A DNA stretch of 64,000 bases from Caecitellus pseudoparvulus (Eukaryota; Protista; Bigyra: Bicosoecida). Below, piece by piece: positions 1,862 through 20,228 of this stretch. The DNA lies in contig CBFFRQ010000054.1 of the NCBI GenBank assembly GCA_965644315.1, positions 248,001 to 312,000 on the forward strand, in the 5' to 3' direction. The position numbers were made by a program, and so were the translations under genes. The notes under the pieces are model-generated. The model did not search any database, was not told where the DNA came from, and was given only the letters and a program-made list of their open reading frames with translations. Every line of letters begins with the position of its first letter. The first letter of the stretch is position 1.

Positions 1862-2270
1862 GACAACTGGCTGGTGCTGGTGCGGGCAGTTTGGGCGGCC
1901 GAAGGGCGACCTGCCACGCCCTGGAGATTCAGGCAAGGGGGTCTGGGCAAGGGCACTCGCTGGGTCGTCAGTTGGGTGGGTTTTATTTGCCATTGGCGTG
2001 CACTGAAGCGAAATGTGGGAGATATTCGTACTTGCGGAAATTCGTTTACAGCACCTGTCGGAAGAAAGCACCTGCAACCTGCACCGGGATAGGACCAACA
2101 ACTCGATCCAAGTGCACTAGTCCACACATCACACATAAATTCAATCCCCACCACACCAGCACAGGACGCACGCCTGAGAGAGCCCTCCCCATTTCGCCCG
2201 GCAAAGGCTGGGCGGACCCGCTGCCTGTTTGGTGCTGCTTACGGCACTGCTCTTGCGCCACCACGCCGAC

Positions 2271-4838
2271 ATGGCTGTTGCTGCACCCGCGGAAACGACG
2301 GCAGCAGGGCCACCTGCCAGCGTAGAGGACGGAAAGGACGCACCCATGGCGCCCGCGCGTACATTCTCGGAGTCTTTGGCAGCAGCAGAGGGCGGCGACG
2401 CTCAGGCGGCGTTTTCTGTCGGCTCAGCTTTCCTTACCGGGAGCGACGGCGCGCCGACAGACCCCCTGCGAGCCTGCAAGTTCCTGCACATGGCCATGGA
2501 GGCAGAGGTGGAGGGCGCTGCAGACGCGTTTGAAAAGGCGATGTTGATGGATGCGGGAGATGGGCCGACTGTCGCTGACACGTGGGACTGGCTGGAGGCC
2601 GCTCAGTCCTCGGCCGATGCCAACGCAGCTCTGGCTCTGGCGGCAGTGTACCGCGACGGAGCAGGGGCGTTGCCAGTGGACCCGGAACAAGCCGAGGTGT
2701 TCCTGCGCCTCGCCTCCAAGCACGGCTCAGGGGAAGCGTCTCTCTTGCTGGGGCGAGCTGGGCTGACGCCGCCGCCGCCGGGGGTGCCTGCCTGCAACGT
2801 GTCACCGGCTGACAGCCTGGCCTTCTTCAAACGCGCGTCCGTGTCGCTGGAGCCCGGCATCGCCCGAGCGGCGGCTGTGGACATGGCACACCTCTTCAGC
2901 CGTGGCAACCCGCCCACCGCGCCGGATGGGGAGGAGCTGCCCCCACCAGAGGAGGGCGTGGATGCGGTGGCGGAGCTGGGCCGGGTCCCCGTGGACCCCC
3001 TCCGGGCCGTGCAGTGGGCCCGGGCCGCAGGGGAGCTTGGCGCAGAGCAAGGCGCGGACCTCCTGCGGCAGTGTGAGGAAGCACTGGGGCCGGACCAGGC
3101 TGGCCTGTGGCGGCTGGCGCAGACAGCGACAGGGGGCGGGCAGACGGCACCTGACGCGGCATTCGAGCTGGGCGTCAAGTACTACTTTGGGCGGGGCGTG
3201 CCGAAGGACATGGCGGAGGCGGTGAAGTGGTTTCGTATGGCGGGCAGCGCGGGGCATGTGCGTGCGTGTGGGCAGCTGGGGTTCATCTACGCGTCAGGCA
3301 AGCCCGGCGTGCCGGCGTCTGACGGCGAGGCGTGTGCGTGGATGGAGCAGGCGGCGGTGCTGGGCGACATGAACGCAGCGTACAACCTGGGCCACATGCT
3401 GTCCAACGGGCGTGGGCCGAACGGGGTGGATGGGCCTGGCGCGCTGAAGTGGTTGTCGAAGCCGGCGGCACGAGGCGACGCCAAGTCCATGAACGCCATC
3501 GGGCGCCTGTACCACGCCGGCATCGGCATGGAGCGGGACTGGGTGCAGGCAGCCAAGCACTACGAGGCTGCAGTGGAGGCCGGCCACGACACCGCCGCGT
3601 GGAATTTGAAGGTCATGTACGAGCACGGCGGGCACGGCCTGGAGGCGGACGAGGCGCTGGAGGGCAAGTGGGCCCACGTTGCGGCCAAGCGGGGGTACTC
3701 CTCTGCCATGACCTTCATGGGCGCTGCGTTTGAGAGTGGCACGCACTCCTTCCAGCGCAACGCCCGCGCCTCACGACACTGGTGGTTGAAGGGCGCAGAG
3801 GCGGGAGCATCCTACTGCATGATGCGCGCTGGTCTGATCTATTCCATCGGGGACGGCGGTGTGTGGGACGGTGCTGCTGTGCGCAGGTGGTGGCTTGCAT
3901 TGCAGGAATCTGGCTGCGATGACTCCATAGCCCTGACATACCCAGCCCTTGTCCACCTGCACGGGTATGGCGGCCCGAGGGACGACGCGCAGGGCTATAA
4001 ACTGATGTCGGAGGCGTATGAGCGGTACGGCTGCATCCAGTCGGGATCCTACGCCGCCGTGATGATGTCGGAAGGGCGGGGGACGGAGGCGGACTTTGAC
4101 GGCGCAGTTGCCAAGGCAGTCGAAATCATGGACCGCGCGGCAGCCGATGAGCAGGACGAGCTGCTGGAACTGCACTTTTTGGTGGGCTTGGCCCACTGGC
4201 GAGGTGCCGGCGGCAAGGCGGTGGACGAGGAAGCAGCCCTGGAGTGTTGGCGGCAAGCAGCTGCGTATGGCCAGACTGGCGCCGTGCTGCTCATCGAAGA
4301 GGTCACGGCCACCCGTGACAGCAGCCCCTTTGACGCCAGCGCCATGCTGGAGGCAGGGGAGGCCGCCAATGCCGAGACGCTGTTCCGGCTGGGCCTCAGC
4401 CACATCCTCGGCACAGACGAGGGTGTGGAAGCGAGCTGGCCCGCGGCGTTCCAGTGCATGGTCCGGGCAGCTGACCTGGGCCACCCCCTTGCAGCCTGTG
4501 CCGAGTGCTGGATGCGTGAGGAGCTGCACGGGGGCGCCGTGGACGCTGCCGAGCGGGAAGCAGACCTCATTCGCTCAGCTTCCGAAGCTGGCGTTCCCCT
4601 CGGGCACCTGCACTACGCACGCCTGCTGGGAGCTGGGTGTGGCCAGCAGGAGCCAGACCTGGCACAGGCCATGCGACTCCTGGCACTGGCGAGTGAAGGA
4701 GGGCTGGAGGAGGCAGCCGTGCACAAGGCGCACGACATGGTGGCGTTTTCGTACGGCCGCGAAAGCGACTTGGAGGCGTTGCCAGAGGCCATGCGCCAGG
4801 CAGTGCTGAAGCTGCTGGCAAAGAGCACCGATGAGTAG
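2271..4838 (+). CDS. SEL1-like repeat protein (full-length copy)
   Basis: Multiple SEL1 motifs (AAFELGVKYYFGRGVPKDMAEAVKWFRMA; AYNLGHMLSNGRG; AIGRLYHAGIGMERDWVQAAKHYEAA). First ATG is at 2271. Confidence 0.9.
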   Translation: MAVAAPAETTAAGPPASVEDGKDAPMAPARTFSESLAAAEGGDAQAAFSVGSAFLTGSDGAPTDPLRACKFLHMAMEAEVEGAADAFEKAMLMDAGDGPTVADTWDWLEAAQSSADANAALALAAVYRDGAGALPVDPEQAEVFLRLASKHGSGEASLLLGRAGLTPPPPGVPACNVSPADSLAFFKRASVSLEPGIARAAAVDMAHLFSRGNPPTAPDGEELPPPEEGVDAVAELGRVPVDPLRAVQWARAAGELGAEQGADLLRQCEEALGPDQAGLWRLAQTATGGGQTAPDAAFELGVKYYFGRGVPKDMAEAVKWFRMAGSAGHVRACGQLGFIYASGKPGVPASDGEACAWMEQAAVLGDMNAAYNLGHMLSNGRGPNGVDGPGALKWLSKPAARGDAKSMNAIGRLYHAGIGMERDWVQAAKHYEAAVEAGHDTAAWNLKVMYEHGGHGLEADEALEGKWAHVAAKRGYSSAMTFMGAAFESGTHSFQRNARASRHWWLKGAEAGASYCMMRAGLIYSIGDGGVWDGAAVRRWWLALQESGCDDSIALTYPALVHLHGYGGPRDDAQGYKLMSEAYERYGCIQSGSYAAVMMSEGRGTEADFDGAVAKAVEIMDRAAADEQDELLELHFLVGLAHWRGAGGKAVDEEAALECWRQAAAYGQTGAVLLIEEVTATRDSSPFDASAMLEAGEAANAETLFRLGLSHILGTDEGVEASWPAAFQCMVRAADLGHPLAACAECWMREELHGGAVDAAEREADLIRSASEAGVPLGHLHYARLLGAGCGQQEPDLAQAMRLLALASEGGLEEAAVHKAHDMVAFSYGRESDLEALPEAMRQAVLKLLAKSTDE

Positions 4839-5461
4839 CAAAGGCACCGTGTGCCCCCCCGCATACCCACACAAAGTGGAAGGTGGGGGGGTCATTGCAG
4901 GTGGCAAGAATGCAACCTCCGCTACAGATGTCCGTGTTCATGCAGGCAGCCAAGCCAGGGGGCGGGCAAGTTTGCTTGGCTGGATGGGGGTGACGGGGGG
5001 GGGGGCGTTGGAAAGGGGTGTGGAGTCGTCCGCTAGCGTCGGAAGGCGGCAGAGCTTGGGGTCGGCATCTCGTCGGGTTCCATGTGAGGGGGGGTCGCCG
5101 CGCGGGGTTGGGCGTTGGCCTCCCGAGCAGCTTGGGACGCCATGGTGTGCGGCAAAACGCTGAGATGGCTGGTGGAGGTGCTGGTGAGGTGGGGATGCCT
5201 GGGTGAGGTCAGTCCAGCACGCCTCGGGAGCACAGTGCTTGAGCAAGTTTGCATGGATGGGCGTGAGTGAGCCTTGAAGCAGTGATCTGCAGGTAGGTGT
5301 GGCACTGTCACGACTGTGTCACAACAATCGTCCACGACTTCTTCCTGCATTGGACAGTGAGAAACATCCACACTTGAGATTCCTTTTTTGAGCCGCTTGT
5401 GTAGCTGTGCAGGTGAGGTGTTTGGCGGCAGCACTTGCGCCATCTGCAACCCCACCACGCC

Positions 5462-8400
5462 ATGGCTGATGGCAGGGGCAGTCAGTCGGTGGAGGGGCGA
5501 TGGAAGGCTGCATGTGACGGTGAGCAAGAAGATGTATTGCTGAGCATACTTGAGAGGTGCGGTGGTGGTGCGGGTGTGGGTCTGGGAGGCTTGTCAAGCG
5601 GGGAGACGTCAGCTGGCTTTTTGGTGGCGTGCAAGAAAGGACACGTTGCGCTGCTGCGTGGGCTGTTGGCGTTGGAGGGGGATCTTGTTGTGAACGTGCA
5701 TGCACAAGATGAGGATGGGCCCGAGGCTGGCTTCCGACTTGCCTGTGCGAACGGCCACGTGGATGTGGTACGTGAGCTGCTGGCTCTGACGGGTGATCGA
5801 GCTGTGGATGTGCATGCAGGGGTCAATGGCGACCCTGAGTATGGCTTCTTGCTTGCCTGTGAGAACGGCCACATTGACGTGGTGCGTGAGCTGCTGGCGC
5901 TGAGCGGACATCGAGCCGTGGATGTGCATGCAGGGGTCAAGGGCGACCCTGAGTGGGGCTTCCGTGCTGCCTGTGAGAACGGCCACATTGACGTGGTGCG
6001 TGAGCTGCTGGCGCTGACGGGTGATCGAGCTGTGAATGTGCATGCAGGCTTCAATGGCGACCCTGAGTACGGCTTCCGACTTGCCTGTGTGAACGGGCAC
6101 ATTGATGTGGTGCGTGAGCTGCTGGCGCTGAGCGGACATCGAGCCGTGGATGTGCATGCAGGGGTCAAGGGCGACCCTGAGTACGGCTTCCTGGCTGCCT
6201 GCCAGAACGGCCACATTGACGTGGTGCGTGAGCTGCTGGCTCTGACGGGTGATCGAGCCGTGGATGTGCATGCAGGGGTCAAGGGCGTTCCTGAGTATGG
6301 CTTCCGACTTGCCTGTGCGAACGGCCACATTGACGTGGTGCGTGAGCTGCTGGCTCTGACGGGTGATCGAGCTGTGGATGTGCATGCAGGGGTCAAGGGC
6401 GACCCTGAGTGGGGCTTCCTGGCTGCCTGCCAGAACGGCCACATTGACGTGGTGCGTGAGCTGCTGGCTCTGAGCGGACATCGAGCCGTGGATGTGCATG
6501 CAGGGGTCAAGGGCGACCCTGAGTGGGGCTTCCGTGCTGCCTGTGAGAACGGCCACATTGACGTGGTGCGTGAGCTGCTGGCGCTGACGGGTGATCGAGC
6601 TGTGAATGTGCATGCAGGCTTCAATGGCGACCCTGAGTACGGCTTCCGACTTGCCTGTGTGAACGGGCACATTGATGTGGTGCGTGAGCTGCTGGCGCTG
6701 AGCGGACATCGAGCCGTGGATGTGCATGCAGGGGTCAAGGGCGACCCTGAGTACGGCTTCCTGGCTGCCTGCCAGAACGGCCACATTGACGTGGTGCGTG
6801 AGCTGCTGGCTCTGACGGGTGATCGAGCCGTGGATGTGCATGCAGGGGTCAATGGCGTTCCTGAGTATGGCTTCCGACTTGCCTGTGCGAACGGCCACAT
6901 TGACGTGGTGCGTGAGCTGCTGGCTCTGACGGGTGATCGAGCTGTGGATGTGCATGCAGGGGTCAAGGGCCACCCTGAGTACGGCTTCCGAAAGGCCTGT
7001 GAGAACGGTCACATTGATGTGGTGCGTGAGCTGCTGGCGCTGAGCGGACATCGAGCCGTGGATGTGCATGCAGGGGTCAAGGGCGACCCTGAGTGGGGCT
7101 TCCTGGCTGCCTGCCAGAACGGCCACGTGGATGTGGTGCGTGAGCTGCTGGCACTGACGGGTGATCGAGTCGTGGATGTGCATGTAAGGGTCAATGGCGA
7201 CCCTGAGTACGGCTTCCTGCTTGCCTGTGAGAACGGCCACATTGACGTGGTGCGTGAGCTGCTGGCGCTGACGGGTGATCGAGCTGTGGATGTGCATGCA
7301 GGGGTCAAGGGCCACCCTGAGTGGGGCTTCCGTGCTGCCTGTGAGAACGGCCACATTGACGTGGTGCGTGAGCTGCTGGCGCTGAGCGGACATCGAGCCG
7401 TGGATGTGCATGCAGGGGTCAAGGGCGACCCTGAGTACGGCTTCCTGCTTGCCTGCCAGAACGGCCACATTGACGTGGTGCGTGAGCTGCTGGCGCTGAG
7501 CGGACATCGAGCCGTGGATGTGCATGCAGGGGTCAAGGGCGACCCTGAGTACGGCTTCCGACTTGCCTGTGAGAACGGCCACATTGACGTGGTGCGTGAG
7601 CTGCTGGCGCTGACGGGTGATCGAGCCGTGGATGTGCATGCAGGCTTCAAGGGCGACGTTGAGTACGGCTTCCGAAAGGCCTGTGAGAACGGCCACGTGG
7701 ACGTGGTGCGTGAGCTGCTGGCGCTGAGTGGGCATCGAACCGTGGATGTGCATGCAGGCTTCAATGGCGACCCTGAGTATGGCTTCCGAGCTGCCTGCCA
7801 GAACGGCCACATTGACGTGGTGCGTGAGCTGCTGGCACTGACGGGTGATCGAGCTGTGGATGTCCATGCCGCTTTCAAGGGTAGTCCTGAGGCTGCCTTC
7901 CTGGCTGCCTGTGTGAACGGACACTTTGCTGTTGTGCGTGAGCTGCTGGCGCTGACGGGTGATCGAGTCGTGGATGTGCATGCAGGCTTCAAGGGTGACC
8001 CTGAGTATGGCTTCCGAAAGGCCTGTGAGAACGGCCACATTGACGTGGTGCGGGAGCTGCTGGCTCTGAGCGGACATCGAGCCGTGGATGTGCATGCAGG
8101 GGTCAAGGGCGACCCTGAGTGGGGCTTCCTGGCTGCCTGCCAGAACGGCCACGTGGATGTGGTGCGTGAGCTGCTGGCACTGACGGGTGATCGAGTCGTG
8201 GATGTGCATGTAAGGGTCAATGGCGACCCTGAGTGGGGCTTCCGTGCTGCCTGTGAGAACGGCCACGTGGATGTGGTGCGTGAGCTGCTGGCTCTGACGG
8301 GTGATCGAGCCGTGGATGTGCATGCAGGGGTCAATGGCGACCCTGAGTATGGCTTCCGAGCTGCCTGCCGGCACGGCCACGTGGAGGTGGTGCGCGAGCT

Positions 8401-8626
8401 GCTGGCTCTGACGGGTGGTCGAGTCATCTCACTGCAATCATGCCTTGAGGCTGGAGAGTTGGCTAGGCAGGCAGCCAGAGATGCCGTTTGGCTCGGCACC
8501 AGCACTCGGCAGGGTCGCATGGCCATGATACTGCTACGGAGCGCAAAGAGGGCAAGGAAGCGTCCACGGCCACAGACCGGCGCAGCGTTGGTGTCTTCAT
8601 CAGGGAAGGCTGCACGCTCTGACTGA
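5462..8626 (+). CDS. Capped 38-aa atypical ankyrin-repeat protein, ANK-A (24 repeats, 1054 aa)
   Basis: 87-aa N-cap, 23 full repeats E[YWA]GF[RL][LAK]AC[AEVQ]NGHIDVVRELLAL[ST]G[HD]RAVDVHAG[VF][KN]GDP, then a terminal repeat and C-cap DAVWLGTSTRQGRMAMILLR. ACxxGHxDVVRELL matches the ankyrin core AAxxGHxxIVxxLL. Confidence 0.9.
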   Translation: MADGRGSQSVEGRWKAACDGEQEDVLLSILERCGGGAGVGLGGLSSGETSAGFLVACKKGHVALLRGLLALEGDLVVNVHAQDEDGPEAGFRLACANGHVDVVRELLALTGDRAVDVHAGVNGDPEYGFLLACENGHIDVVRELLALSGHRAVDVHAGVKGDPEWGFRAACENGHIDVVRELLALTGDRAVNVHAGFNGDPEYGFRLACVNGHIDVVRELLALSGHRAVDVHAGVKGDPEYGFLAACQNGHIDVVRELLALTGDRAVDVHAGVKGVPEYGFRLACANGHIDVVRELLALTGDRAVDVHAGVKGDPEWGFLAACQNGHIDVVRELLALSGHRAVDVHAGVKGDPEWGFRAACENGHIDVVRELLALTGDRAVNVHAGFNGDPEYGFRLACVNGHIDVVRELLALSGHRAVDVHAGVKGDPEYGFLAACQNGHIDVVRELLALTGDRAVDVHAGVNGVPEYGFRLACANGHIDVVRELLALTGDRAVDVHAGVKGHPEYGFRKACENGHIDVVRELLALSGHRAVDVHAGVKGDPEWGFLAACQNGHVDVVRELLALTGDRVVDVHVRVNGDPEYGFLLACENGHIDVVRELLALTGDRAVDVHAGVKGHPEWGFRAACENGHIDVVRELLALSGHRAVDVHAGVKGDPEYGFLLACQNGHIDVVRELLALSGHRAVDVHAGVKGDPEYGFRLACENGHIDVVRELLALTGDRAVDVHAGFKGDVEYGFRKACENGHVDVVRELLALSGHRTVDVHAGFNGDPEYGFRAACQNGHIDVVRELLALTGDRAVDVHAAFKGSPEAAFLAACVNGHFAVVRELLALTGDRVVDVHAGFKGDPEYGFRKACENGHIDVVRELLALSGHRAVDVHAGVKGDPEWGFLAACQNGHVDVVRELLALTGDRVVDVHVRVNGDPEWGFRAACENGHVDVVRELLALTGDRAVDVHAGVNGDPEYGFRAACRHGHVEVVRELLALTGGRVISLQSCLEAGELARQAARDAVWLGTSTRQGRMAMILLRSAKRARKRPRPQTGAALVSSSGKAARSD
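5723..8422 (+). repeat. Coding tandem array of 114-bp units (24 units)
   Basis: Unit starts at GAG 5723 and recurs every 114 bp to 8345. Confidence 0.95.
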
Positions 8627-9075
8627 AGGGCAGAGTAGGTGTGGGCTCCACGCTCCACCGCGCAGGTTGCCAAGGCCATTGCCAGGCTCTGGGGTGACCA
8701 ACGTGCGTAAGCTAGATAATGCACGTGAGCCTTGCATGGTTGGGGGCGTTGGCCTGGAAGCCATCCCAAGGATGCGCAACATCTGCACCGACAGCGTGGC
8801 AGGTCCGTGGCGAACTGGCGAGGCTGTGGAAGGTCATGCTGGTCTTGTGATCATCTGCGCATCACCCTTGCAGCAGTGAACAGGCGACGGGCAAGTTTTC
8901 CGCTAGGGGCGACGCGTTTGCACTTTGCTCGGGGCAGTGGCATACATGGGGAGGTTCAGAGTCAAGGCAGCAGCAGCTCCCCTGCTCGCTCAAGCGGAGG
9001 CAAAAGAACCGGGTGGAAGACTTCCAGGGGACGCGGACAATGCATTGCGAGGGGATTCCGGGAAAGACTTGGGTC

Positions 9076-9457
9076 TCAGCGCTCAGACGTGGTGGGGGGC
9101 TCCTCGCCCTCGTCGCCGCCCTGCCGCCCCGACAGCAGGCGCACGTTGAGGAAGTCCCGTGTCTTGGCCACCTTCACCGCCCCTTCGCGCTGCTTGCGCT
9201 GGGCCAGGTCGTCCGCCAGCATGACCCGCAGGAGGTCACTCATGGTGACGACGCCCAGGACGGTGCGGCTGTCTCCAACGACGGCCAGGTGGCGCAAGCC
9301 CTTGCTGAGCATGTACTCGGCAGCCCGTGCCAGGGTCCAGGATGGCCGCCCGCACTTGACGGGGCGGACATGGCATCTGTGATGGGGGTGGTGGTGGCGT
9401 CGGGTCATACCTGAGCCGCGCGTGAAGCGGCCAGGCACCGCAGCAGGGTCAGGCCTG
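9076..9457 (-). pseudogene. Remnant of CBS-domain gene (3' end plus a 52-bp 5' piece; internal ~1.19-kb deletion and 1-bp frameshift)
   Basis: C-terminal VKCGRP...TTSER is identical to 16181 onward. GACGGGGCGG here versus GACGGGGGCGG at ~16463 shifts the frame. The sequence jumps from the equivalent of 16512 to 17702. Confidence 0.85.
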
Positions 9458-9461
9458 CACC

Positions 9462-11501
9462 GTGTCACTGGCTAACAGCCTGGCCTTCTTCAAACGCGCG
9501 TCCGTGTCGCTGGAGCCCGGCATCGCCCGAGCGGCGGCTGTGGACATGGCACACCTCTTCAGCCGTGGCAACCCGCCCACCGCGCCGGATGGGGAGGAGC
9601 TGCCCCCACCAGAGGAGGGCGTGGATGCGGTGGCGGAGCTGGGCCGGGTCCCCGTGGACCCCCTCCGTGCCGTGCAGTGGGCCCGGGCCGCAGGGGAGCT
9701 TGGCGCAGAGCAAGGCGCGGACCTCCTGCGGCAGTGTGAGGAGGCACTGGGGCCGGATCAGGCTGGCCTGTGGCGGCTGGCGCAGACAGCGACAGGGGGC
9801 GGGCAGACGGCACCTGACGCGGCATTCGAGCTGGGCGTCAAGTACTACTTTGGGCGGGGCGTGCCGAAGGACATGGCGGAGGCGGTGAAGTGGTTTCGTA
9901 TGGCGGGCAGTGCGGGGCATGTGCGGGCGTGTGGGCAGCTGGGGTTCATCTACGCGTCAGGCAAGCCTGGCGTGCCGGCGTCTGACGGCGAGGCGTGTGC
10001 GTGGATGGAGCAGGCGGCGGTGCTGGGCGACATGAACGCAGCGTACAACCTGGGCCACATGCTGTCCAACGGGCGTGGGCCGAACGGTGTGGATGGGCCT
10101 GGCGCGCTGAAGTGGTTGTCGAAGCCGGCGGCACGCGGTGACGCCAAGTCCATGAACGCCATCGGGCGCCTGTACCACGCCGGCATCGGCATGGAGCGGG
10201 ACTGGGTGCAGGCAGCCAAGCACTACGAGGCTGCAGTGGAGGCTGGCCACGACACCGCCGCGTGGAATTTGAAGATCATGTACGAGCACGGCGGGCACGG
10301 CCTGGAGGCGGACGAGGCGCTGGAGGGCAAGTGGGCCCACGTTGCGGCCAAGCGGGGGTACTCCTCTGCCATGACCTTCATGGGCGCTGCGTTTGAGAGT
10401 GGCACGCACTCCTTCCAGCGCAACGCCCGCGCCTCACGACACTGGTGGTTGAAGGGCGCAGAGGCGGGAGCATCCTACTGCATGATGCGCGCTGGTTTGA
10501 TCTATTCCATCGGGGACGGCGGTGTGTGGGACGGTGCTGCTGTGCGCAGGTGGTGGCTTGCATTGCAGGAATCTGGCTGCGATGACTCCATAGCCCTGAC
10601 ATACCCAGCCCTTGTTCACCTGCACGGGTATGGCGGCCCGAGGGACGACGCGCAGGGCTTTAGACTGATGTCGGAGGCGTATGAGCGGTACGGCTGCATC
10701 CAGTCGGGATCCTACGCCGCCGTGATGATGTCGGAAGGGCGGGGGACGGAGGCGGACTTTGACGGCGCAGTTGCCAAGGCAGCCGAAATCATGGACCGCG
10801 CGGCAGCCGATGAGCAGGACGAGCTGCTGGAACTGCACGTTTTGGTGGGCTTGGCATACTGGCGAGGTGCCGGCGGCAAGGCGGTGGACGAGGAAGCTGC
10901 CCTGGAGTGTTGGCGGCAAGCAGCTGCATATGGCCAGACTGGCGCCGTGCTGCTCATCGAAGAGGTCACGGCCACCCGTGACAGCAGCCCCTTTGACGCC
11001 AGCGCCATGCTGGAGGCAGGGGAGGATGCCAATGCCGAGACGCTGTTCCGGCTGGGCCTCAGTCACATCCTCGGCACAGACGAGGGTGTGGAAGCGAGCT
11101 GGCCCGCGGCGTTCCAGTGCATGGTCCGGGCAGCTGACCTGGGCCACCCCCTTGCAGCCTGTGCCGAGTGCTGGATGCGTGAGGAGCTGCACGGGGGCGC
11201 CGTGGACGCTGCCGAGCGGGAAGCAGACCTCATTCGCTCAGCTTCCGAAGCTGGCGTTCCCCTCGGGCACCTGCACTACGCACGCCTGCTGGGAGCTGGG
11301 TGTGGCCAGCAGGAGCCAGACCTGGCACAGGCCATGCGACTCCTGGCACTGGCGAGCGAAGGAGGGTTGGAGGAGGCAGCCGTGCACAAGGCGCACGACA
11401 TGGTGGCGTTTTCGTACGGCCGCGAAAGCGACTTGGAGGCGTTGCCAGAGGCCATGCGCCAGGCAGTGCTGAAGCTGCTGGCAAAGAGCACCGATGAGTA
11501 G
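9462..11501 (+). CDS. 5'-truncated SEL1-repeat gene copy (open frame; first ATG 9546; gene or pseudogene)
   Basis: About 30 substitutions over ~2 kb versus 2799-4838 (manual count). No stops. Lacks roughly the first 173 codons and the native upstream region. Confidence 0.75.
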   Translation: MSLANSLAFFKRASVSLEPGIARAAAVDMAHLFSRGNPPTAPDGEELPPPEEGVDAVAELGRVPVDPLRAVQWARAAGELGAEQGADLLRQCEEALGPDQAGLWRLAQTATGGGQTAPDAAFELGVKYYFGRGVPKDMAEAVKWFRMAGSAGHVRACGQLGFIYASGKPGVPASDGEACAWMEQAAVLGDMNAAYNLGHMLSNGRGPNGVDGPGALKWLSKPAARGDAKSMNAIGRLYHAGIGMERDWVQAAKHYEAAVEAGHDTAAWNLKIMYEHGGHGLEADEALEGKWAHVAAKRGYSSAMTFMGAAFESGTHSFQRNARASRHWWLKGAEAGASYCMMRAGLIYSIGDGGVWDGAAVRRWWLALQESGCDDSIALTYPALVHLHGYGGPRDDAQGFRLMSEAYERYGCIQSGSYAAVMMSEGRGTEADFDGAVAKAAEIMDRAAADEQDELLELHVLVGLAYWRGAGGKAVDEEAALECWRQAAAYGQTGAVLLIEEVTATRDSSPFDASAMLEAGEDANAETLFRLGLSHILGTDEGVEASWPAAFQCMVRAADLGHPLAACAECWMREELHGGAVDAAEREADLIRSASEAGVPLGHLHYARLLGAGCGQQEPDLAQAMRLLALASEGGLEEAAVHKAHDMVAFSYGRESDLEALPEAMRQAVLKLLAKSTDE

Positions 11502-12124
11502 CAAAGGCACCGTGTGCCCCCCCGCATACCCACACAAAGTGGAAGGTGGGGGGGTCATTGCAGGTGGCAAGAATGCAACCTCCGCTACAGAAGTTGGTGT
11601 TCATGCAGGCAGCCAAGCCAGGGGGCGGGCAAGTTTGCTTGGCTGGATGGGGGTGACGGGGGGGGGGGCGTTGGAAAGGGGTGTGGAGTCGTCCGCTAGC
11701 GTCGGAAGGCGGCAGAGCTTGAGGTCTGTACCTCGTCGGGTTCCATGTGAGGGGGGGTCGCCGCGCGGGGTAGGGTGTTGGCCTCCCGAGCAGCTTGGGA
11801 CGCCATAGTGTGCGGCGAAACGTTGATATCGCAGATGAAGGTGCTGGTGAGGTGGGGATGCCAGGGTGAGGTCAGTCCAGCACGCCTCGGGAGCACAGTG
11901 CTTGAGCAAGTCTGCATGGATGGGCGTGAGCGAGCCAGGCAGCAGTAATCCGCAGGCAGGTGGGACACTGTCACGACTGTGTCAAAACTATCGTCCACGA
12001 CTTCTTCCTGCATTGGACAGTGAGAAACATCCACACTTGAGATTCCTTTTTTGAGCCGCTTGTGTAGCTGTGCAGGTGAGGTGTTTGGCGGCAGCACTTG
12101 CGCCATCTGCAACCCCACCACGCC

Positions 12125-15100
12125 ATGGCTGATGGCAGGGGCAGTCAGTCGGTGGAGGGGCGATGGAAGGCTGCATGTGATGGCGAGCAGGTAGATGTAT
12201 TGCTGAGCATGCTTGAGAAGTGCGGTGGTGGTGCGGGTGCGGGTCTGGGAGGCTTGTCAAGCGAGGACATATCAGCTGGCTTTTTGGTTGCGTGCAAGAA
12301 AGGACACGTTGCGCTGCTGCGTGGGCTGCTGGCGTTGGATGGGGGTCTTGCTGTGGACGTGCACGCGGAAGACCAGCACGGGGCCGAGGCTGGCTTCCGG
12401 CTTGCTTGCATGACTGGTAACATTGACGTGGTGCGTGAGCTGCTGGCCTTGACCGGGCATCGTGAGGTGAATGTGCATGCTGGTCCAGAGGGCCGGCCTG
12501 AGGCTGGCTTCCGACTTGCCTGTGAGAATGGGCACATTGATGTGGTGCGTGAGCTGCTGGCGCTGAGCGGACACCGCGAGGTGGATGTGCATGCTGGGTC
12601 TGAGGGCAGGCCTGAGTTCGGCTTCGCGCTTGCCTGTCAGAATGGGCATGTTGATGTGGTGCGGGAGCTGCTATCGCTGAGCGGACACCGCGAGGTGGAT
12701 GTGCATGCTAGACCTGAGAGTAGGCCTGAGGCTGGCTTCGGGCTTGCCTGTCAGGAAGGGCACATTAACGTGGTGCGTGAGCTTCTGGCGCTGAGCGGAC
12801 ACCGCGAGGTGGACGTGCATGCTGCTTTCAGGGGTGATCCTGAGTTCGGCTTTCGAGTTGCCTGTGAGTTCGGGCACATTGACGTGGTGCGGGAGCTGCT
12901 GGCATTGAGCGGGCACCGCGAGGTGGACGTACACGCTGGGAATGAGGATGGGCTTGAGGCTGGCTTCCTGGTTGCCTGTCAGGAAGGGCACATTGATGTA
13001 GTGCGTGAGCTGCTGGCATTGAGCGGGCACCGCGAGGTGGACGTACATGCTGCTTTCAGGGGTGATCCTGAGTTCGGCTTTCGAGCTGCCTGTCACGAAG
13101 GGCACATTGACGTGGTGCGGGAGCTGCTGGCTTTGACTGGGCACCGCGAGGTAGATGTGCATGCTGCTTTCAGGGGTGGTCCTGAGGCTGGCTTCCTGGT
13201 TGCCTGTCAGGAAGGGCACATTGACGTGGTGCGGGAGCTGCTGGCATTGAGCGGGCATCGAGAGGTGGACGTACACGCTGGGAATGAGGATGGGCTTGAG
13301 TATGGCTTTCGAGCTGCCTGTCGTTTCGGGCACATTGATGTAGTGCGTGAGCTGCTGGCATTGAGCGGGCACCGCGAGGTGGACGTACATGCTGGGGATC
13401 AGGATGGGCCAGAGGCTGGCTTCCGAGTTGCCTGTCAGGAAGGGCACATTGACGTGGTGCGGGAGCTGCTGGCTTTGACTGGGCACCGCGAGGTAGATGT
13501 GCATGCTGCTTTCAGGGGTGGTCCTGAGGCTGGCTTCCTGGTTGCCTGTCATTTCGGGCACATTGACGTGGTGCGGGAGCTGCTGGCTTTGACTGGGCAC
13601 CGCGAGGTGGACGTACACGCTGGGAATGAGGATGGGCTTGAGTATGGCTTTCGAGCTGCCTGTCAGGAAGGGCACATTGATGTAGTGCGTGAGCTGCTGG
13701 CATTGAGCGGGCATCGTGAGGTTGAGGTGCAAGCTGGGAATCAGGATGGGCCAGAGGCTGGCTTCCGAGTTGCCTGTCAGGAAGGGCACATTGACGTGGT
13801 GCGGGAGCTGCTGGCTTTGACTGGGCACCGCGAGGTAGATGTGCATGCTGCTTTCAGGGGTGGTCCTGAGGCTGGCTTCCTGGTTGCCTGTCATTTCGGG
13901 CACATTGACGTGGTGCGTGAGCTGCTGTCGCTGACGGGTGATCGCGAGGTGGACGTACACGCTGGGAATGAGGATGGGCTTGAGTATGGCTTTCGAGCTG
14001 CCTGTCAGGAAGGGCACATTGATGTAGTGCGTGAGCTGCTGGCATTGAGCGGGCATCGTGAGGTTGAGGTGCAAGCTGGGGATCAGGATGGGCCAGAGGC
14101 TGGCTTCCGAGTTGCCTGTCAGGAAGGGCACATTGACGTGGTGCGGGAGCTGCTGGCTTTGACTGGGCACCGCGAGGTAGATGTGCATGCTGCTTTCAGG
14201 GGTGGTCCTGAGGCTGGCTTCCTGGTTGCCTGTCATTTCGGGCACGTTGACGTGGTGCGTGAGCTGCTGTCGCTGACGGGTGATCGAGAGGTGGACGTAC
14301 ACGCTGGGAATGAGGATGGGCTTGAGTATGGCTTCCGAGCTGCCTGTCAGGAAGGGCACATTGACGTGGTGCGTGAGCTGCTGTCGCTGACGGGTGATCG
14401 CGAGGTGGAAGTGCATGTTGGGGACCAGTACGGGCCTGAGCAAGGTTTCCGAGTTGCCTGTGCGAATGGCCACGTGGATGTGGTGCGTGAGCTGCTGGCA
14501 CTAACGGGGCATCGTGAGGTGAATGTGCATGCTGGGGATGAGGATGGGCCAGAGGCTGGCTTCCGACTTGCCTGTCGTTTTGGGCACGTTGACGTGGTGC
14601 GTGAGCTGCTGGCTTTGACCGGGCATCGAGAGGTGGACGTGCATGCTGGGGATGAGGATGGGCCTGAGGCTGGCTTCCGAGTTGCCTGTCAGGAAGGGCA
14701 CATTGACGTGGTGCGTGAGCTGCTGGCATTGAGTGGGTGTCGTGAGGTGAATGTCCGTGCAGCTCTCAAGGGTGATCCAGAGAGTATCCTCCAACATGCA
14801 TGCCGGAAAGGGCACATTGACATGGTGCGTGAGCTGCTGGCGTTGACGGGTGACCGTGCTTTGGACGTGCATGCTCCGGACAATTTGGGGCCTGAGGGTG
14901 CCTTTCGAGCTGCCTGTCAGGAAGGGCACATTGACGTGGTGCGGGAGCTGTTGGCTTTGAGCGGACACCGCGAGGTGGACGTGCATGCTGGGGACCTGTA
15001 TGGGCTTGAACAAGGTTTCCGAGTTGCCTGTCAGGAAGGGCACATTGACGTGGTGCGTGAGCTGCTGGCTTTGACTGGGCATCGCGAAGTTGATGTGCAT

Positions 15101-15664
15101 GCTGCGTTCATGGGAGTTCCTGAGCAAGGCTTCCGGATTGCTTGTGTGAGAGGCCACGTGGATGTGGTGCGTGAGCTGCTGGCACTGACGGGGCATCGTG
15201 AGGTGAATGTACATGTGGGATTTGACGAGAGGCCTGAAGCCGGCTTTTGGGCCGCCTGCCAGAAAGGACACGTGGGTGTGCTGCAGGAGCTCCTGGCGTT
15301 GACCGGGCATCGTGAGGTGGACGTACATGTTGATGGGGAGTACGGCTTTCGAGCTGCCTGTGAGAATGGCCATATTGTTGTAGTGCGGGAGCTGCTGGCT
15401 TTGAGTGGTGCTCGTGAGGTGGACGTGCACGCTGCGTTGGACGGTGTTCCTGAGGCTGGCTTCTGGCTTGCCTGCAGGAACGGGCATGTGGAGGTGGTCC
15501 GTGAACTGCTGGGGCTCACAGGTCATCGAGCCATTCCCCTCTTGGTCAGAGTTGCCGCTGAAGAGGTGGCTGTGCAGCCTGCCAAGGATGCCGTTTGGAT
15601 CGGCACCAGCACTCGGCAGGGTCGCATGGCCATGCTGCTGCTGCGGAGCGCAAGGAGAGAGTAG
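12125..15664 (+). CDS. Capped 38-aa atypical ankyrin-repeat protein, ANK-B (28 repeats, 1179 aa)
   Basis: Homologous 87-aa N-cap. Repeats are ExGFxxACxxGHIDVVRELLAL[ST]GHREVDVHAxxxxxx, one of them 34 aa. C-cap DAVWIGTSTRQGRMAMLLLR. Confidence 0.9.
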   Translation: MADGRGSQSVEGRWKAACDGEQVDVLLSMLEKCGGGAGAGLGGLSSEDISAGFLVACKKGHVALLRGLLALDGGLAVDVHAEDQHGAEAGFRLACMTGNIDVVRELLALTGHREVNVHAGPEGRPEAGFRLACENGHIDVVRELLALSGHREVDVHAGSEGRPEFGFALACQNGHVDVVRELLSLSGHREVDVHARPESRPEAGFGLACQEGHINVVRELLALSGHREVDVHAAFRGDPEFGFRVACEFGHIDVVRELLALSGHREVDVHAGNEDGLEAGFLVACQEGHIDVVRELLALSGHREVDVHAAFRGDPEFGFRAACHEGHIDVVRELLALTGHREVDVHAAFRGGPEAGFLVACQEGHIDVVRELLALSGHREVDVHAGNEDGLEYGFRAACRFGHIDVVRELLALSGHREVDVHAGDQDGPEAGFRVACQEGHIDVVRELLALTGHREVDVHAAFRGGPEAGFLVACHFGHIDVVRELLALTGHREVDVHAGNEDGLEYGFRAACQEGHIDVVRELLALSGHREVEVQAGNQDGPEAGFRVACQEGHIDVVRELLALTGHREVDVHAAFRGGPEAGFLVACHFGHIDVVRELLSLTGDREVDVHAGNEDGLEYGFRAACQEGHIDVVRELLALSGHREVEVQAGDQDGPEAGFRVACQEGHIDVVRELLALTGHREVDVHAAFRGGPEAGFLVACHFGHVDVVRELLSLTGDREVDVHAGNEDGLEYGFRAACQEGHIDVVRELLSLTGDREVEVHVGDQYGPEQGFRVACANGHVDVVRELLALTGHREVNVHAGDEDGPEAGFRLACRFGHVDVVRELLALTGHREVDVHAGDEDGPEAGFRVACQEGHIDVVRELLALSGCREVNVRAALKGDPESILQHACRKGHIDMVRELLALTGDRALDVHAPDNLGPEGAFRAACQEGHIDVVRELLALSGHREVDVHAGDLYGLEQGFRVACQEGHIDVVRELLALTGHREVDVHAAFMGVPEQGFRIACVRGHVDVVRELLALTGHREVNVHVGFDERPEAGFWAACQKGHVGVLQELLALTGHREVDVHVDGEYGFRAACENGHIVVVRELLALSGAREVDVHAALDGVPEAGFWLACRNGHVEVVRELLGLTGHRAIPLLVRVAAEEVAVQPAKDAVWIGTSTRQGRMAMLLLRSARRE
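12386..15529 (+). repeat. Coding tandem array of 114-bp units (28 units, one of 102 bp)
   Basis: Unit starts at GAG 12386. A 342-bp super-period is also visible as recurring antisense ORFs at 12828/13170/13512/13854/14196. Confidence 0.95.
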
Positions 15665-16180
15665 GCATGGCCTCGGCCACAGACCGGCCCAGCATAGATG
15701 TCACTAGCAGGGAAGGATCCACGCACTGATAAGTGGCGGGGGAGAGGTGGGCTCTGCCCTGGACCATTCACACAGCCACAACCACGGTCAGGTTGGGGAT
15801 GACCAGCGTGTGTGAGCCAGGGAATGCATCTGAGTTGCGTATCGTCGGGAGCTGCCAGTTGAGTGCGAGCACGGGGATGCGCAACGTCTGCAACCACAGC
15901 GTGGCAGGTCCGTGGCGAGCTGGCGAGGCTGTGGAAGGTCATGCGGGTCTTGTGATCATCTGCACATCACCCATACGGCAGCGAGCAGACGACGGGCAAG
16001 TTTTCCGCTAGGGGCCACGCGTTTGCATTTTGCTCGGGGCAGTGGCATACATGGGGAGGTTCAGAGTCAAGGCAGCAGCAGCTCCCCTGCCCGCCCAAGC
16101 GGAGGCAAAAGAACTTGGCGAAAGACTTCCAGGGGACGCGGACAATGCATTGCGAGGGGATTCCGGGAAAGACTTGGGTC

Positions 16181-17750
16181 TCAGCGCTCAGACGTGGTGG
16201 GGGGCTCCTCGCCCTCGTCGCCGCCCTGCCGCCCCGACAGCAGGCGCACGTTGAGGAAGTCCCGTGTCTTGGCCACCTTCACCGCCCCTTCGCGCTGCTT
16301 GCGCTGGGCCAGGTCGTCTGCCAGCATGACCCGCAGGAGGTCACTCATGGTGACGACGCCGAGGACGGTGCGGCTGTCTCCAACGACGGCCAGGTGGCGC
16401 AAGCCCTTGCTGAGCATGTACTCGGCAGCCCGGGCCAGGGTCCAGGAGGGCCGCCCGCACTTGACGGGGGCGGACATGGCGTCTGTGATGGGGGTGGTGG
16501 TGGCGTCGGGTCCGGTGGCTGTGGCGCCGTCGCCCCCCGCGCCGCCCTCCCCTGCCACCAGGCGCCACAGGATGTCCCGGCTGGTGAGGATGCCCACTGG
16601 CTTGCTGCCCTCCACCACGAGCAAGGACATGATGCCGGCTTCGGCCATCTCGTTGGCGGCGTCGGCCACCGTGACGTCATCGCCCACGTCTGCGTTCAGG
16701 AGGAGCTTCTTTCCAGCTGCATGCTGCCACTCCAGCACGTCTTCCAGGTCCTTCGTGAAGGCGGCGTGTGGCTGTGGCAGGGACTCGTCTGGCGTTTCGG
16801 CAGTGGAGCCCTCCTCGCCGTCTACCACGTCCCCCTTGCCGGCGGACGCGCCTGCCTCCAAAGCAGCGACGCGAGCCGCGTCCTCTTCCTGCAAGACACG
16901 CAGGACGTGCTGCAGCAGTGTGCGGATGGAGACGACGGCTGAGATGGAGGCGGCAGGCAGGTCATCGCCGGGGGGCGCTTCAGATTCCGCAGCAGCGTCC
17001 CCTGCGCCGCCATGCAGCACGGGGAATGACTCCTGGCCTAGCACAGGCATGTGCCGCACTTTGTGTGTCAGCATCCACTCGATGGCACTGCGCAGGCAGG
17101 GAGCGGCGGGCTGAGTGAGCGAGCGCCAGCGGCAATGCAGCCGTGCCGACGCACTCCAACACTGGCGTGTCCACGCTGCAGGAAACGAGCTTGGGGGTCA
17201 TGATGGATGAGGCGACGATGTCGGAGGGACAGAAGGCGCCGTGGTCCAGGTTCATGATGTAGTCCTTTTCCGACAGCAGGCCCTTCACCTTGTCCTCTGT
17301 GACGCACGAGCGTGGCCAGGAGGGAGTGTGGTCTGGTAATACCCTGTTGAGCTCAACGCCAGGGCCAGCGCATCCGACCCCTGTGCAGGCCACCTGCCGC
17401 CAGGCTCACGCACCAGCCGTCACAAGGATGCTCCCCACTTGTCCACTCTTCATCATGCGGATGGCTTCAGGCACAGGCGTCTGGGTCGGGTAGCAGCGCC
17501 GCGGATTGCGGTCGGCATGCGGAATTGGGACAACACGCATCACTCACGTCCACGAGGCAGCTGTGCACCGTCTTTGCCCGGCTGGCCTGCTCATCCTGCA
17601 GCACATCTCGCAAAGTACTGTCAGACACTGGCACCTGCGGCGAAGGCAGGTCTCATGGTGCTTCGCGGTGCACTGTCGAGGGGTAGAGCAGAGCACCTGC
17701 ACATACCTGAGCAGCGCGTGAAGCGTGCAGGCATCGCAGCAGAGTCAGGC
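16181..17750 (-). CDS. CBS-domain protein (two CBS pairs), multi-exon; start uncertain
   Basis: AIRMMKSGQVGSILV; KVKGLLSEKDY...IMTPKLVSCSVDTPVL; intron 17088-17154 joins VLD-AIEWM; TVADAANEMAEAGIMSLLVV...VGILTSRDIL; GLRHLAVV...LGVVTMSDLL. Confidence 0.8.
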
Positions 17751-18402
17751 CTGTAAAGCACAGGGATAGTGAATGTAGATGCGCCTGCATGTGCCAATGG
17801 CACGCTTGTACTACGCACGCAGCTGGCGAGAGCTTGCCGGCACCAGGCTGGACGAATGCGAAGGGTTGGCCGCCGTCAGAAACCTGCGCTTAGACAGAGG
17901 GCGGGAGCGGGCAGTGCAAAGCCTGCTAAACATCAGAGGAACAGGCCACCTTTGTGGTGTTCAGCGTCGCTGCACGCACCGGCTCCACATGCTGGCGCCT
18001 GGATGAGAGCCTGGTGTGCTGCGAAGGCGAACGGCGGGGTGGCTTCGACGCCTTGGCAAGCTTTGCAACGGTTGGCGGTGTCTGGAAGGGCCGTGGGCAG
18101 TGTGGGACGTTCGCTGCCGGAGTTGGTTGACGAGAGTGGATTGACCCGCACTTCAGTCATCCCTGAGCAGCCCGTGCTCGAGCGCAAAGGAGCGCAAGGG
18201 GGTGTGGAGTTAGCCTCAGGGGTGTCAATGGGGGGGTCGATCTTTACCCACCATTTCCCCATCCCACACAACTTTCTCTCTTCTCACGTATCTTTGTGCC
18301 TTTGCCAGCTGTGTAGCATTCCTGCCTACATAGGTTTCATTCGCGTCCTCATCGCGCGTGTGAAGCCCATTTTCGCTCCCGTCACCCAACCCAGTACCAA
18401 CA

Positions 18403-20228
<1,826 letters not shown>

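Follow-up and report, generated by a model that had tools for sequence, protein, structure and literature searches.

Closely similar flanks and strongly diverged ankyrin-array genes in a tandem duplication of a marine protist

Clusters of plant NLR resistance genes evolve by birth and death, combined with sequence exchange that forms chimeras. The closest published analogue of the locus described here is the group of fungal NLR genes with internally conserved repeats (HIC WD40, ANK or TPR repeats, for example in the Podospora HNWD genes het-d, het-e and het-r; PMC4986451, PMC12222747). We analysed a window of 64,000 nt from Caecitellus pseudoparvulus, a marine eukaryote with a genome of ~30 Mb and 65% GC, which contains two ankyrin-array genes, ANK-A and ANK-B. 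As in the fungal genes, the units appear near-identical apart from a handful of hypervariable sites on the face predicted to bind, alleles differ in the number and order of their repeats, assembly of the genes is difficult, and the repeats appear to evolve in concert through unequal crossing-over and exchange within and between paralogs. Unlike the fungal proteins, ANK-A and ANK-B consist of caps and an array; Pfam returned ankyrin and weak spurious matches, with no NACHT, NB-ARC, N-terminal effector or other signalling domain. The unit has 38 residues instead of 33, the host is a marine protist, and the block putatively exchanged here goes beyond the repeats to include some of the N-cap as well as the 3'UTR. 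The likeness to plant NLR clusters lies in tandem duplication adding members, mosaic paralogs, divergence concentrated in the repeat sensor, and presence/absence and copy-number variation between haplotypes; the sensor here is made of ankyrin repeats instead of LRRs, however, with no nucleotide-binding switch and no known link to a pathogen.

A tandem duplication that cuts both flanking genes

BLAST and MAFFT comparisons revealed a tandem segmental duplication at 2790-17753. Positions 2790-9406 align with 9453-16512 and positions 9407-9457 with 17703-17753; 1,190 bp of copy B (16513-17702) are absent from copy A. The duplicated segments, the flanking genes and the junction are as follows.

2790-9457, no strand: copy A of the duplicated segment (period 6,663 nt), its last 5 nt (GCCTG) being the start of copy B
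9453-17753, no strand: copy B of the duplicated segment, 8,301 nt
2229-4838, plus strand: SEL1-A, full-length Sel1-repeat gene (open reading frame, first Met at 2271; Pfam Sel1, E=2e-37), with the breakpoint 2790 inside it
9462-11501, plus strand: SEL1-B, 5'-truncated ('headless') SEL1 copy, still an open frame (first Met at 9546)
9076-9406, minus strand: truncated 3' fragment of a CBS-domain gene in copy A, with a 1-nt deletion at 9360 (Pfam CBS, E=2e-9), aligning to 16181-16512
16181-17074, minus strand: intact CBS-domain gene with two CBS domains (Pfam CBS, E=1e-19) and a possible further exon at 16980-17393
9407-9457, no strand: junction piece with its homologue at 17703-17753, from which it differs at 5 of 51 nt, and with the joint of the 1,190-bp deletion on its left, between 9406 and 9407

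Since the SEL1 and CBS genes are both cut by the duplication, the only complete gene gained is the ankyrin-array gene. The upstream part of SEL1-A (2300-2789) has a counterpart only on contig C157, a third, ~92%-identical collinear copy of C54:235-256 kb that carries a full SEL1 gene and an A-type array, and the 5' part of the CBS-domain gene has no second copy elsewhere in the genome. The SEL1 parts of A and B differ at ~29 of ~2,050 nt (~98.7% identity), in keeping with the ~30 of ~2040 counted in the first-pass annotation, which had also called the CBS-side flank similarly close; the CBS coding fragment is ~98.5% identical, with four synonymous and no non-synonymous differences. Between SEL1-B and SEL1-A, dS is 0.039 and dN 0.0046 (dN/dS 0.12). 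Changes private to SEL1-B lean towards synonymous, 4 of 11 being non-synonymous where 75% would be expected (binomial P about 0.008). In three-way comparisons of SEL1, 38 sites group A with B against C157, 14 are private to B and 14 to A. The right flank (8775-9406) differs at 26 of 632 nt, 20 of them in the non-coding stretch 8775-9016 and 6 in 9017-9406. Letters private to the CBS fragment of copy A were absent from all four runs searched (Logan contigs); they could be strain-specific or consensus errors. No RNA run contained the locus.

The microhomology GCCTG occurs at 2790-2794, 9453-9457 and 17749-17753, and the deletion joint forms a second breakpoint 46-51 nt from the GCCTG joint. The edge pieces of the duplication differ at 8 of 77 nt, against ~1.3% in the interior, and three B-private changes lie inside the left boundary at 2790. 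FoSTeS/MMBIR is a microhomology-mediated, replication-based route of copy-number change. Its marks are present here as a 5-nt microhomology at the joint, an extra breakpoint nearby and an excess of point changes within ~50 nt, although sequence alone cannot show a replicative mechanism and the edge excess could be age without conversion. A microhomology-mediated, error-prone rearrangement would account for the GCCTG joint, the adjacent 1,190-bp deletion and the cluster of point changes, and the same event would have severed SEL1 at one end and the CBS gene at the other. Both joints are spanned by X5 record 20, a contig of 609 nt that stems from an independent marine metagenome (2019) and covers 8885-9490. 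It differs from the window by ~3%, more than A and B differ in the coding flanks; A-type and B-type 3'UTR contexts both occur in the same sample.

Two ankyrin arrays with different units

The ankyrin-array genes and the family-homologous stretch around the first of them are as follows.

5462-8626, plus strand: ANK-A, coding sequence of 1,054 aa, in which an 88-aa N-cap is followed by 23 units of 38 aa and a C-cap unit (together 5726-8461) and then by a tail (Pfam Ank_2, E=1.4e-84)
12125-15664, plus strand: ANK-B, coding sequence of 1,179 aa, with an N-cap and 27 units plus a C-cap (12389-15568) (Pfam Ank_2, E=5.5e-100)
5166-8775, plus strand: ANK cassette A, the extent of family homology, which starts ~250-300 nt before the ATG and goes on for ~150 nt beyond the stop

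Pfam Ank, Ank_3, Ank_4 and Ank_5 also match both proteins. One ANK-B unit is shortened to 34 aa. The tail of ANK-A bears an NLS-like KRARKRPRP motif, found in ANK-A only of the pair; ANK-B has a short tail closed by a premature TAG, which cuts the motif off. The repeat period of both arrays is exactly 114 nt (38 aa), compared with ~33 residues in canonical ankyrin, and the extra residues sit in the loop. An AlphaFold2 single-sequence model of ANK-B residues 1-316 (pTM 0.69) has two helices per unit, with loops at pLDDT<50; the top Foldseek hits of this region in the PDB are all ankyrin or DARPin structures (probability 1.0, target-normalised TM up to 0.68). Both are ankyrin-repeat proteins by profile, and ANK-B also by the predicted solenoid fold. 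The modelled fold is that of DARPins and natural ankyrin scaffolds, in which the framework is fixed and the residues that vary sit in the loop and where helix 1 begins. The loop is five residues longer than in DARPins, giving the 38-residue period, and is modelled at low confidence; and whereas DARPins form a synthetic library, the family here is a natural genomic repertoire. A protein search with ANK-B returned only marine-metagenome proteins of 57-61% identity, plus hits labelled Symbiodinium sp. KB8.

No identical unit is common to the two arrays and the best between-array unit identity is 85%, as the first-pass annotation had maintained for identical units; the array motifs it quoted for each gene also recur in the units. 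Within an array, units share on average 0.877 identity (A) or 0.775 (B), and several fixed synonymous codon differences set the arrays apart. Variation appears concentrated in codons 1, 4, 5, 8, 9 and 33-36, where dN/dS is 0.96 (A) and 1.45 (B) as compared with 0.05-0.17 at framework codons; the ratio of hypervariable dN to framework dS is 1.4-1.8. The ANK-A array contains a higher-order repeat of 570 nt that holds a 383-nt perfect copy, the ANK-B array one of 342 nt, and the arrays of A and C157 are not collinear. The perfect internal repeat, the differing higher-order repeats and the A/C157 non-collinearity indicate that the arrays turn over quickly. Unequal crossing-over would keep building and homogenising higher-order repeats within each array, with about nine surface codons per unit free to vary.

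Divergence profile and the origin of the cassettes

Identity between A and B is 98-100% at 2812-5058, about 90% at 5059-5326 and 100% at 5327-5517. It then drops from 96% to 88% within the N-cap, where 15 of 88 residues differ (15 of 87 in the first reading). The arrays show a mean unit identity of 73% (74-77% by BLAST), followed by about 58% in the C-cap (8400-8470), about 94% in the conserved tail motif (8470-8550) and about 65% in the 3'UTR (8550-8775; up to 71% in other 3'UTR comparisons), the latter matching the high divergence reported earlier after the stop. The profile, ranging from 100% (5327-5517) to about 58% (C-cap), is far from the flat course that would have spoken against a divergence peak on the ANK gene; it is patchy, however, and forms no single smooth peak. 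The flank is itself a mosaic, in which tracts diverged by 0-1.4% (4839-5058 and 5327-5517) contrast with tracts diverged by 8-10% (5059-5326, 8775-9016 and 9407-9457).

The divergent zone, about 5059-8775, coincides with the family-homologous stretch, in which family matches start at 5166-5178 and stop at about 8763-8813. No other part of the duplicated unit than this cassette, which runs from promoter to 3'UTR, has >150 paralogs elsewhere in the genome. Silent divergence of the framework is deep: dS is 0.65 between A and B, ~17-fold that of SEL1 (0.039), while it is 0.17 between A and C157 and 0.45-1.23 between B and every other array tested. The B array is nearer to other arrays (81-82% in nucleotides; 88-89% by consensus) than to A (73-75%). 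An A-type array is also present on contigs C50 and C23, and C89 and C79 match it at about 85% over one 140-nt unit. The 3'UTRs of A and B are 69-71% alike mutually and each 72-74% identical to other paralogs, and the 3' end of A is 79% identical to four other paralogs and 75% to B. The donor search covered whole-genome match lists and ~135 kb of fetched paralog-bearing sequence, which holds part of the paralogs; it revealed no near-identical donor for either cassette in the assembly, the best array match of B being 81-82% and its best 3'UTR match about 74%. All copies examined in the fetched sequence, about 20 arrays and 18 N-caps, resemble complete genes that each possess caps, a tail and an upstream region; an in-frame stop is present in about 14 of roughly 150 N-cap matches listed genome-wide.

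Along the sequence, the tree order flips inside the N-cap from A with B to A with the haplotig C157. At 5328-5497, 23 consecutive sites group A with B against C157, and from 5548 on sites mostly group A with C157 against B (permutation test on site-pattern run lengths, P<5e-5). Among the N-cap sites at which B stands apart from A and C157, the B letter was seen in other paralogs at 18 of 19, and at six of them in at least 10 of 13 paralogs. Tree incongruence along the sequence, with boundaries that match the family-homology limits, points to cassette replacement. The A/C157 non-collinearity, the recent higher-order repeats, the N-cap mosaic and a 171-nt patch 95% identical between two neighbouring arrays likewise point to repeat shuffling and exchange. 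A parallel mosaic lies upstream, where C54:242072-242872 and C54:246850-247650 are 97.6% identical and adjoin diverged arrays.

The A and B units would combine flanks of recent, allele-level ancestry with cassettes from different family lineages, and we infer from this combination that one cassette was exchanged as a block. The block would begin within the N-cap (about 5518-5548) and run to about 8775, where family homology ends. It could have arrived by non-allelic recombination or gene conversion involving another member of the family, or the duplication could have captured a chromosome already bearing the swapped allele. Cassette-level exchange or divergent-allele capture, followed by unequal crossing-over inside the arrays, is to our mind the probable explanation. 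Of the options raised in the first-pass annotation, replacement is favoured for a whole cassette over the array alone: in addition to the array, the block would include a portion of the N-cap, as well as the C-cap and 3'UTR. Its second option, that two old alleles were captured, draws support from the truncated flank genes, whose differences are allele-like and for the most part synonymous, with an indirect hint also in the A-type and B-type 3' contexts that occur in one metagenome; its flank-homogenising gene conversion may fit the mosaic flank tracts.

Alternative explanations and meaning for the family

The best surviving alternative, although we consider it rather improbable, is that the tandem pair is old, A and B having been distinct genes since early in the radiation of the family, with flanks that conversion keeps homogenising and a cassette too diverged to join in. 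It would explain the patchwork of flank tracts and the about 10% divergence at the duplication edges, as expected if conversion rarely reaches the ends, and it agrees with a junction contig that is further from the window than A is from B in the coding flanks. An aged truncated SEL1 should decay, however, and SEL1-B is open over 2,040 nt with synonymous-biased private changes; the edges, moreover, are not diverged by the >40% expected from the age of the arrays. Contig depth ratios of ~100 (collapsed) versus 31-47 (single-copy) fit three flank copies in all, which would leave one for the other haplotype, a weak argument as Logan contigs collapse variants. The state of that haplotype was read indirectly from these depths, C157 ending inside its array.

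A head-to-tail joining of two haplotypes of a single-copy locus by the assembler is very unlikely, because the marine-metagenome contig crosses the junction; the first-pass annotation would have taken a lack of reads there, together with half coverage on each copy, as a sign of such an artefact. A joint that combines microhomology with a 1,190-bp deletion and clustered mutations is not something assemblers create; the role of second haplotype, for SEL1 as well as for the A-type gene, is already filled by C157; and in run X1 the depth of the A/B-type contig is about twofold that of the C157-type (92 versus 47). The assembly does contain haplotigs at ankyrin clusters, C157 among them, the right flank has no second contig, and the evidence at the locus consists of Logan contigs rather than raw reads, with no single molecule spanning a whole copy.

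Divergence of the arrays in place after a recent duplication, whether by hypermutation targeted at the repeats or because strong positive selection acted on them, would fit the elevated dN/dS of the hypervariable codons, but is hardly credible given the ~17-fold excess at silent framework sites, the fixed synonymous codon differences, a non-coding 3'UTR just 65-70% identical, the 'private' letters of B that mostly equal the family-majority letters, and the recurrence of the A array type on other contigs. In-place hypermutation was rejected on the silent-site and 3'UTR divergence; a process like that of diversity-generating retroelements was considered and set aside. We give just as little credence to programmed diversification, in which silent donor cassettes would be copied somatically or at high frequency to sites of expression, much as VSG switching and the assembly of lamprey VLRs work: the many clustered members, conserved cassette ends that could guide exchange and the mosaic genes suit it, as do the patches in which neighbouring genes are 95-98% identical, but the fetched copies look complete (in-frame stops in some listed N-cap matches aside), A and B have no near-identical donor, and variation among molecules is not evidenced within a sample.

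The locus, with probable cassette exchange or divergent-allele capture at its centre, illustrates the birth and then the diversification of one member of a large, fast-evolving repeat-protein family. In one possible order of events, duplication opened a slot, block exchange with other family members installed a different sensor and unequal crossing-over remodelled the array. Fungal HIC-repeat NLRs and plant resistance clusters follow the same logic, which would here operate in an unrelated marine protist on proteins that are ankyrin arrays only. In duplicates of this kind, the similarity of the flanks makes the genes inside seem far younger than they are. The immune or self-recognition label given to the ANK pair at first reading is an analogy only, and it seems doubtful that the unit is a dedicated exchange cassette in a germline repertoire of >150 hypervariable binding proteins, a protist recognition system of capped 38-residue ankyrin arrays with no NLR-type switch, in which loci would exchange entire sensors and take up divergent alleles in tandem. 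If the family is indeed a recognition repertoire, the pair would be a good natural experiment, with an identical promoter and first codons, different sensors and an NLS-like tail in ANK-A alone.

Anatomy and authenticity of the duplication

Self-BLAST and pairwise MAFFT alignment mapped the duplication and confirmed what the first-pass annotation had described, a tandem pair with near-identical flanks and divergent ankyrin-array genes (ANK-A and ANK-B). Positions prefixed C54 are those of the contig CBFFRQ010000054.1, of which the window is C54:248001-312000.

Features of the locus and its surroundings
2790-9457, copy A of the tandem segmental duplication
9453-17753, copy B of the tandem segmental duplication
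18534-20228 (region 18.5-20.2 kb), + strand, alpha-tubulin gene; the ORF is exon 2 onward (MPSDK... to ...GDEY), with intron-like sequence before it
41345-42214 (C54:289408), + strand, short ankyrin-family member of three units; array consensus 0.85 to B versus 0.76 to A, with a VQPAKDAVW-class C-cap

The window is eukaryotic, as indicated by the alpha-tubulin gene with its intron; the assembly comprises 30.6 Mb in 215 contigs at ~65% G+C. Each breakpoint carries the pentanucleotide GCCTG: 2790-2794 on the left, and 17749-17753 where the original segment ends on the right; the joint has a single copy, 9453-9457. A 1,190-bp stretch equivalent to 16513-17702 is missing from copy A, so that 9407-9457 represents a remnant of 17703-17753. 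The edge pieces at the joint are ~10% diverged between the copies (3/26 and 5/51 nt). Rearrangements of the FoSTeS/MMBIR type provide an analogy to this joint. The breakpoints interrupt a Sel1-repeat gene (+ strand) and a CBS-domain gene (- strand); copy B therefore begins with a 5'-truncated SEL1 (SEL1-B, the full-length gene being SEL1-A) and copy A ends with a CBS 3' fragment. The ankyrin-array gene is the sole complete gene gained.

It is highly improbable that the tandem arrangement is an assembly artefact. Evidence was taken at the contig level from Logan contigs of public sequencing runs; those with the locus were one labelled 'organism A' and marine metagenomes. Record 20 of the run X5, an independent marine metagenome, is a 609-nt contig that spans 8885-9490 (19 mismatches, 3 gaps) and extends at least 38 nt beyond each of the two joints; X5 also contains an A-type 3'UTR connected to 8914 and B-type 3'UTR context. 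This contig argues against an artefact, as do the microhomology, the deletion beside it and the cluster of point changes. In the run X1, contigs end exactly at 9406 and 9453, and their loose ends lead into the intact CBS gene and upstream SEL1-A, as true branch points would. The X1 contigs resemble a majority consensus drawn from three copies of the flank. Their depth was ~100 where copies collapse versus 31-47 where unique, and at 9656-9843 an A/B-type contig had depth 92 and a contig of the type of C157, another contig of the assembly, had depth 47; as weak evidence, these depths fit one haplotype with two copies and a second with a single copy.

The CBS fragment carries letters private to copy A at 9214, 9256, 9328, 9343 and 9375 (substitutions) and 9360 (1-nt deletion). 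These were found in none of four runs, all of which, including the junction-crossing metagenome contig, show the copy-B letters; the private letters may be strain-specific changes or assembly consensus errors. Two odd joints were also recorded. One X1 contig (depth 38, just 30 nt on one side) connects the downstream flank of ANK-A (8813) with the spacer ahead of ANK-B (11914), leaving out 3.1 kb, and one X5 contig returns from 10029 to 9383 with 12 additional letters. They may be further structural variants of the locus, or chimeras.

The divergent cassette and its family homology

Pairwise alignments of the two copies gave a strongly uneven identity profile.

Identity between copies A and B (copy A positions)
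2812-5058: 98-100%
5059-5326: ~90%
5327-5517: 100%
N-cap: drops from 96% to 88%
Arrays: mean unit identity 73%; 74-77% by BLAST
C-cap, 8400-8470: ~58%
Family-conserved tail motif, 8470-8550: ~94%
3'UTR, 8550-8775: ~65%
8775-9016: 92%
9017-9406: 98.5%

The elevated divergence occupies 5059-8775. Other family members are homologous from 5166-5178 to ~8763-8813; by comparison, the assembly holds three copies of SEL1 (A, B and C157) and two of the duplicated CBS part (A and B). The divergent block is thus essentially that portion of the duplicated unit with partners elsewhere in the genome, and this match of boundaries is the strongest argument for an exchange of the cassette (N-cap part, array, C-cap and 3'UTR) with other members of the family. 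The counts given previously hold: ~29 differences in ~2,050 nt between the SEL1 copies (about 30 had been claimed), 15 differing residues of 88 in the N-cap, no unit common to both arrays, and the motifs quoted for each array. As a correction, the unit in both arrays is 38 aa (114 nt) long and not the canonical 33 aa.

Each unit has a fixed framework, with variable codons 1, 4, 5, 8, 9 and 33-36 and semi-variable codons 22, 24, 26, 32 and 37. Framework dS was 0.17 both within A and from A to C157, 0.51 within B, 0.65 from A to B, and 0.45-1.23 from B to every other array tested. Compared with SEL1 dS, silent-site divergence of the arrays is ~17 times that of this flank. At several codons, among them 10, 21, 23, 25 and 31, A and B are each fixed for a different synonymous choice. 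The closest matches of array B are arrays at other places (81-82% nt; consensus 88-89%), its identity to A being 73-75%; units of the A type are present on contigs C50 and C23 too, and C89 and C79 match A-type at ~85% over one 140-nt unit. The C-cap classes differ (QAARDAVW in A versus VQPAKDAVW in B). The 3'UTRs are 69-71% identical between A and B and each 72-74% to other paralogs; the 3' end of A is 79% identical to four other paralogs and 75% to B. Arrays and 3' ends of A and B belong to different family lineages. The silent-site, 3'UTR, C-cap and array-type data largely exclude that the copies diverged in place following a recent duplication.

Flank variation and a breakpoint in the N-cap

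C157, a 19.7-kb contig, aligns collinearly to C54:235285-255853 (~92% identity) and is read as the other haplotype. Its SEL1 is complete, with the stretch that precedes the breakpoint, and matches SEL1-A at 96%; it also has an ankyrin gene with an A-type array inside which the contig stops. Part of C54:242.9-245.5 kb is seemingly absent from it, and array lengths differ. No second copy of the right flank (the CBS gene and beyond) was found in the assembly.

Eighteen N-caps (two of them duplicates) from the retrieved subset of the family were aligned, and A, B and C157 were compared against the 13 remaining paralogs. Along the N-cap and its upstream tract, 11 A-private sites in succession (5249-5322) are followed by 23 successive sites at which A and B agree against C157 (5328-5497), and from 5548 to 5720 sites uniting A and C157 against B predominate. 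Label shuffling matched these run lengths in none of 20,000 trials. The reversal between tracts places a recombination breakpoint between 5497 and 5548. In 5328-5497, C157 is ~13-15% diverged from C54 and, at several of the sites at which A equals B, has the letter most common in the family. The 'private' N-cap letters of B recur among other paralogs at 18 of the 19 sites (at six, in at least 10 of 13); from ~5548 rightward, A and C157 thus have derived states in common, and B has kept the family-typical ones.

In the SEL1 part, 38 sites group A and B against C157, 14 are B-private and 14 A-private. Nei-Gojobori estimates of dS, dN and dN/dS were 0.039, 0.0046 and 0.12 (A-B), 0.076, 0.0112 and 0.15 (A-C157), and 0.067, 0.0119 and 0.18 (B-C157). 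Outside the edge cluster, 4 of 11 B-private SEL1 changes are non-synonymous versus 75% expected (binomial P ~0.008), and between the CBS fragment and the intact gene there are four synonymous changes, no non-synonymous one and a 1-nt deletion. The truncated SEL1-B and CBS fragments, presumably dead, hence differ from their intact partners as functional alleles do. This synonymous bias indicates that functional genes were the source of most flank differences, which could be captured allelic polymorphism or later conversion imports and are unlikely to reflect post-duplication decay.

Array replacement, allele capture and flank-homogenising gene conversion had been proposed as mechanisms. Of these, the best supported is cassette replacement or allele capture, which is on balance probable, given the homology-limit coincidence and the lineage data. 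The cassette may have been swapped with another family member after duplication; alternatively, the swap may have occurred earlier in one allelic lineage, that allele then being captured in tandem. Whole-assembly match lists contain no near-identical donor, making a very recent swap less likely. The main rival, an old tandem pair whose flanks were homogenised, is rather unlikely.

Family dynamics and possible function

The ANK-B N-cap matches at least 162 genome places, many clustered. For the ANK-B protein, the best matches overall are marine-metagenome proteins (57-61% identity). The nearest named public relatives are labelled Symbiodinium sp. KB8: P0005 (44% identity) and P0050 (annotated 'YCF1, partial'; 57% over 9% of the query). 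These suggest related protists, or contaminant contigs in the KB8 assembly. A domain search of the ANK-A and ANK-B proteins returned ankyrin repeats and no other domain. Residues 1-316 of ANK-B, modelled by AlphaFold2 from the single sequence (pTM 0.69), show two helices per unit and low-confidence loops, and every top Foldseek match to the model was an ankyrin or DARPin chain. ANK-A ends in an NLS-like tail (8546-8626, KRARKRPRPQTG...RSD) common to at least six other paralogs. In ANK-B (15640-15730), a premature TAG at the matching place removes this tail, remnants of which are readable past the stop; short tails are seen in several further paralogs.

Within array A lies a higher-order repeat of 570 nt (five units) that includes a 383-nt perfect copy (5900-6852), a sign that five units were duplicated very recently through unequal exchange; array B has a higher-order repeat of 342 nt (three units). 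The A and C157 arrays have unit types, not unit order, in common. dN/dS is ~1-1.45 at hypervariable codons versus 0.05-0.17 at the framework. Two other family genes nearby share ~800 bp at 97.6% identity (C54:242072-242872 and C54:246850-247650; window -5928..-5128 and -1150..-350) through C-cap, tail and downstream sequence; their arrays are ~78-80% identical, with a 171-nt patch at 95% (C54:240527-240697 and 245761-245931). This second mosaic pair, at C54:242-247 kb, indicates that patchwise exchange is a general property of the cluster. Plant R-gene clusters offer an analogy to the locus.

In fungal NLRs, highly internally conserved WD40, ANK or TPR repeats evolve in concert through unequal crossing-over and exchange within as well as between paralogs; diversifying selection acts on a few binding-face positions, and repeat number and order vary among alleles (PMC4986451; PMC12222747). 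These HIC-repeat NLRs are the nearest published analogue and have the shuffling and exchange of repeats in common with ANK-A and ANK-B, which, however, have no NOD or effector domain, the defining feature of fungal NLRs, and differ also in unit length (38 aa) and host. By analogy, the ankyrin genes may have an immune or self-recognition role.
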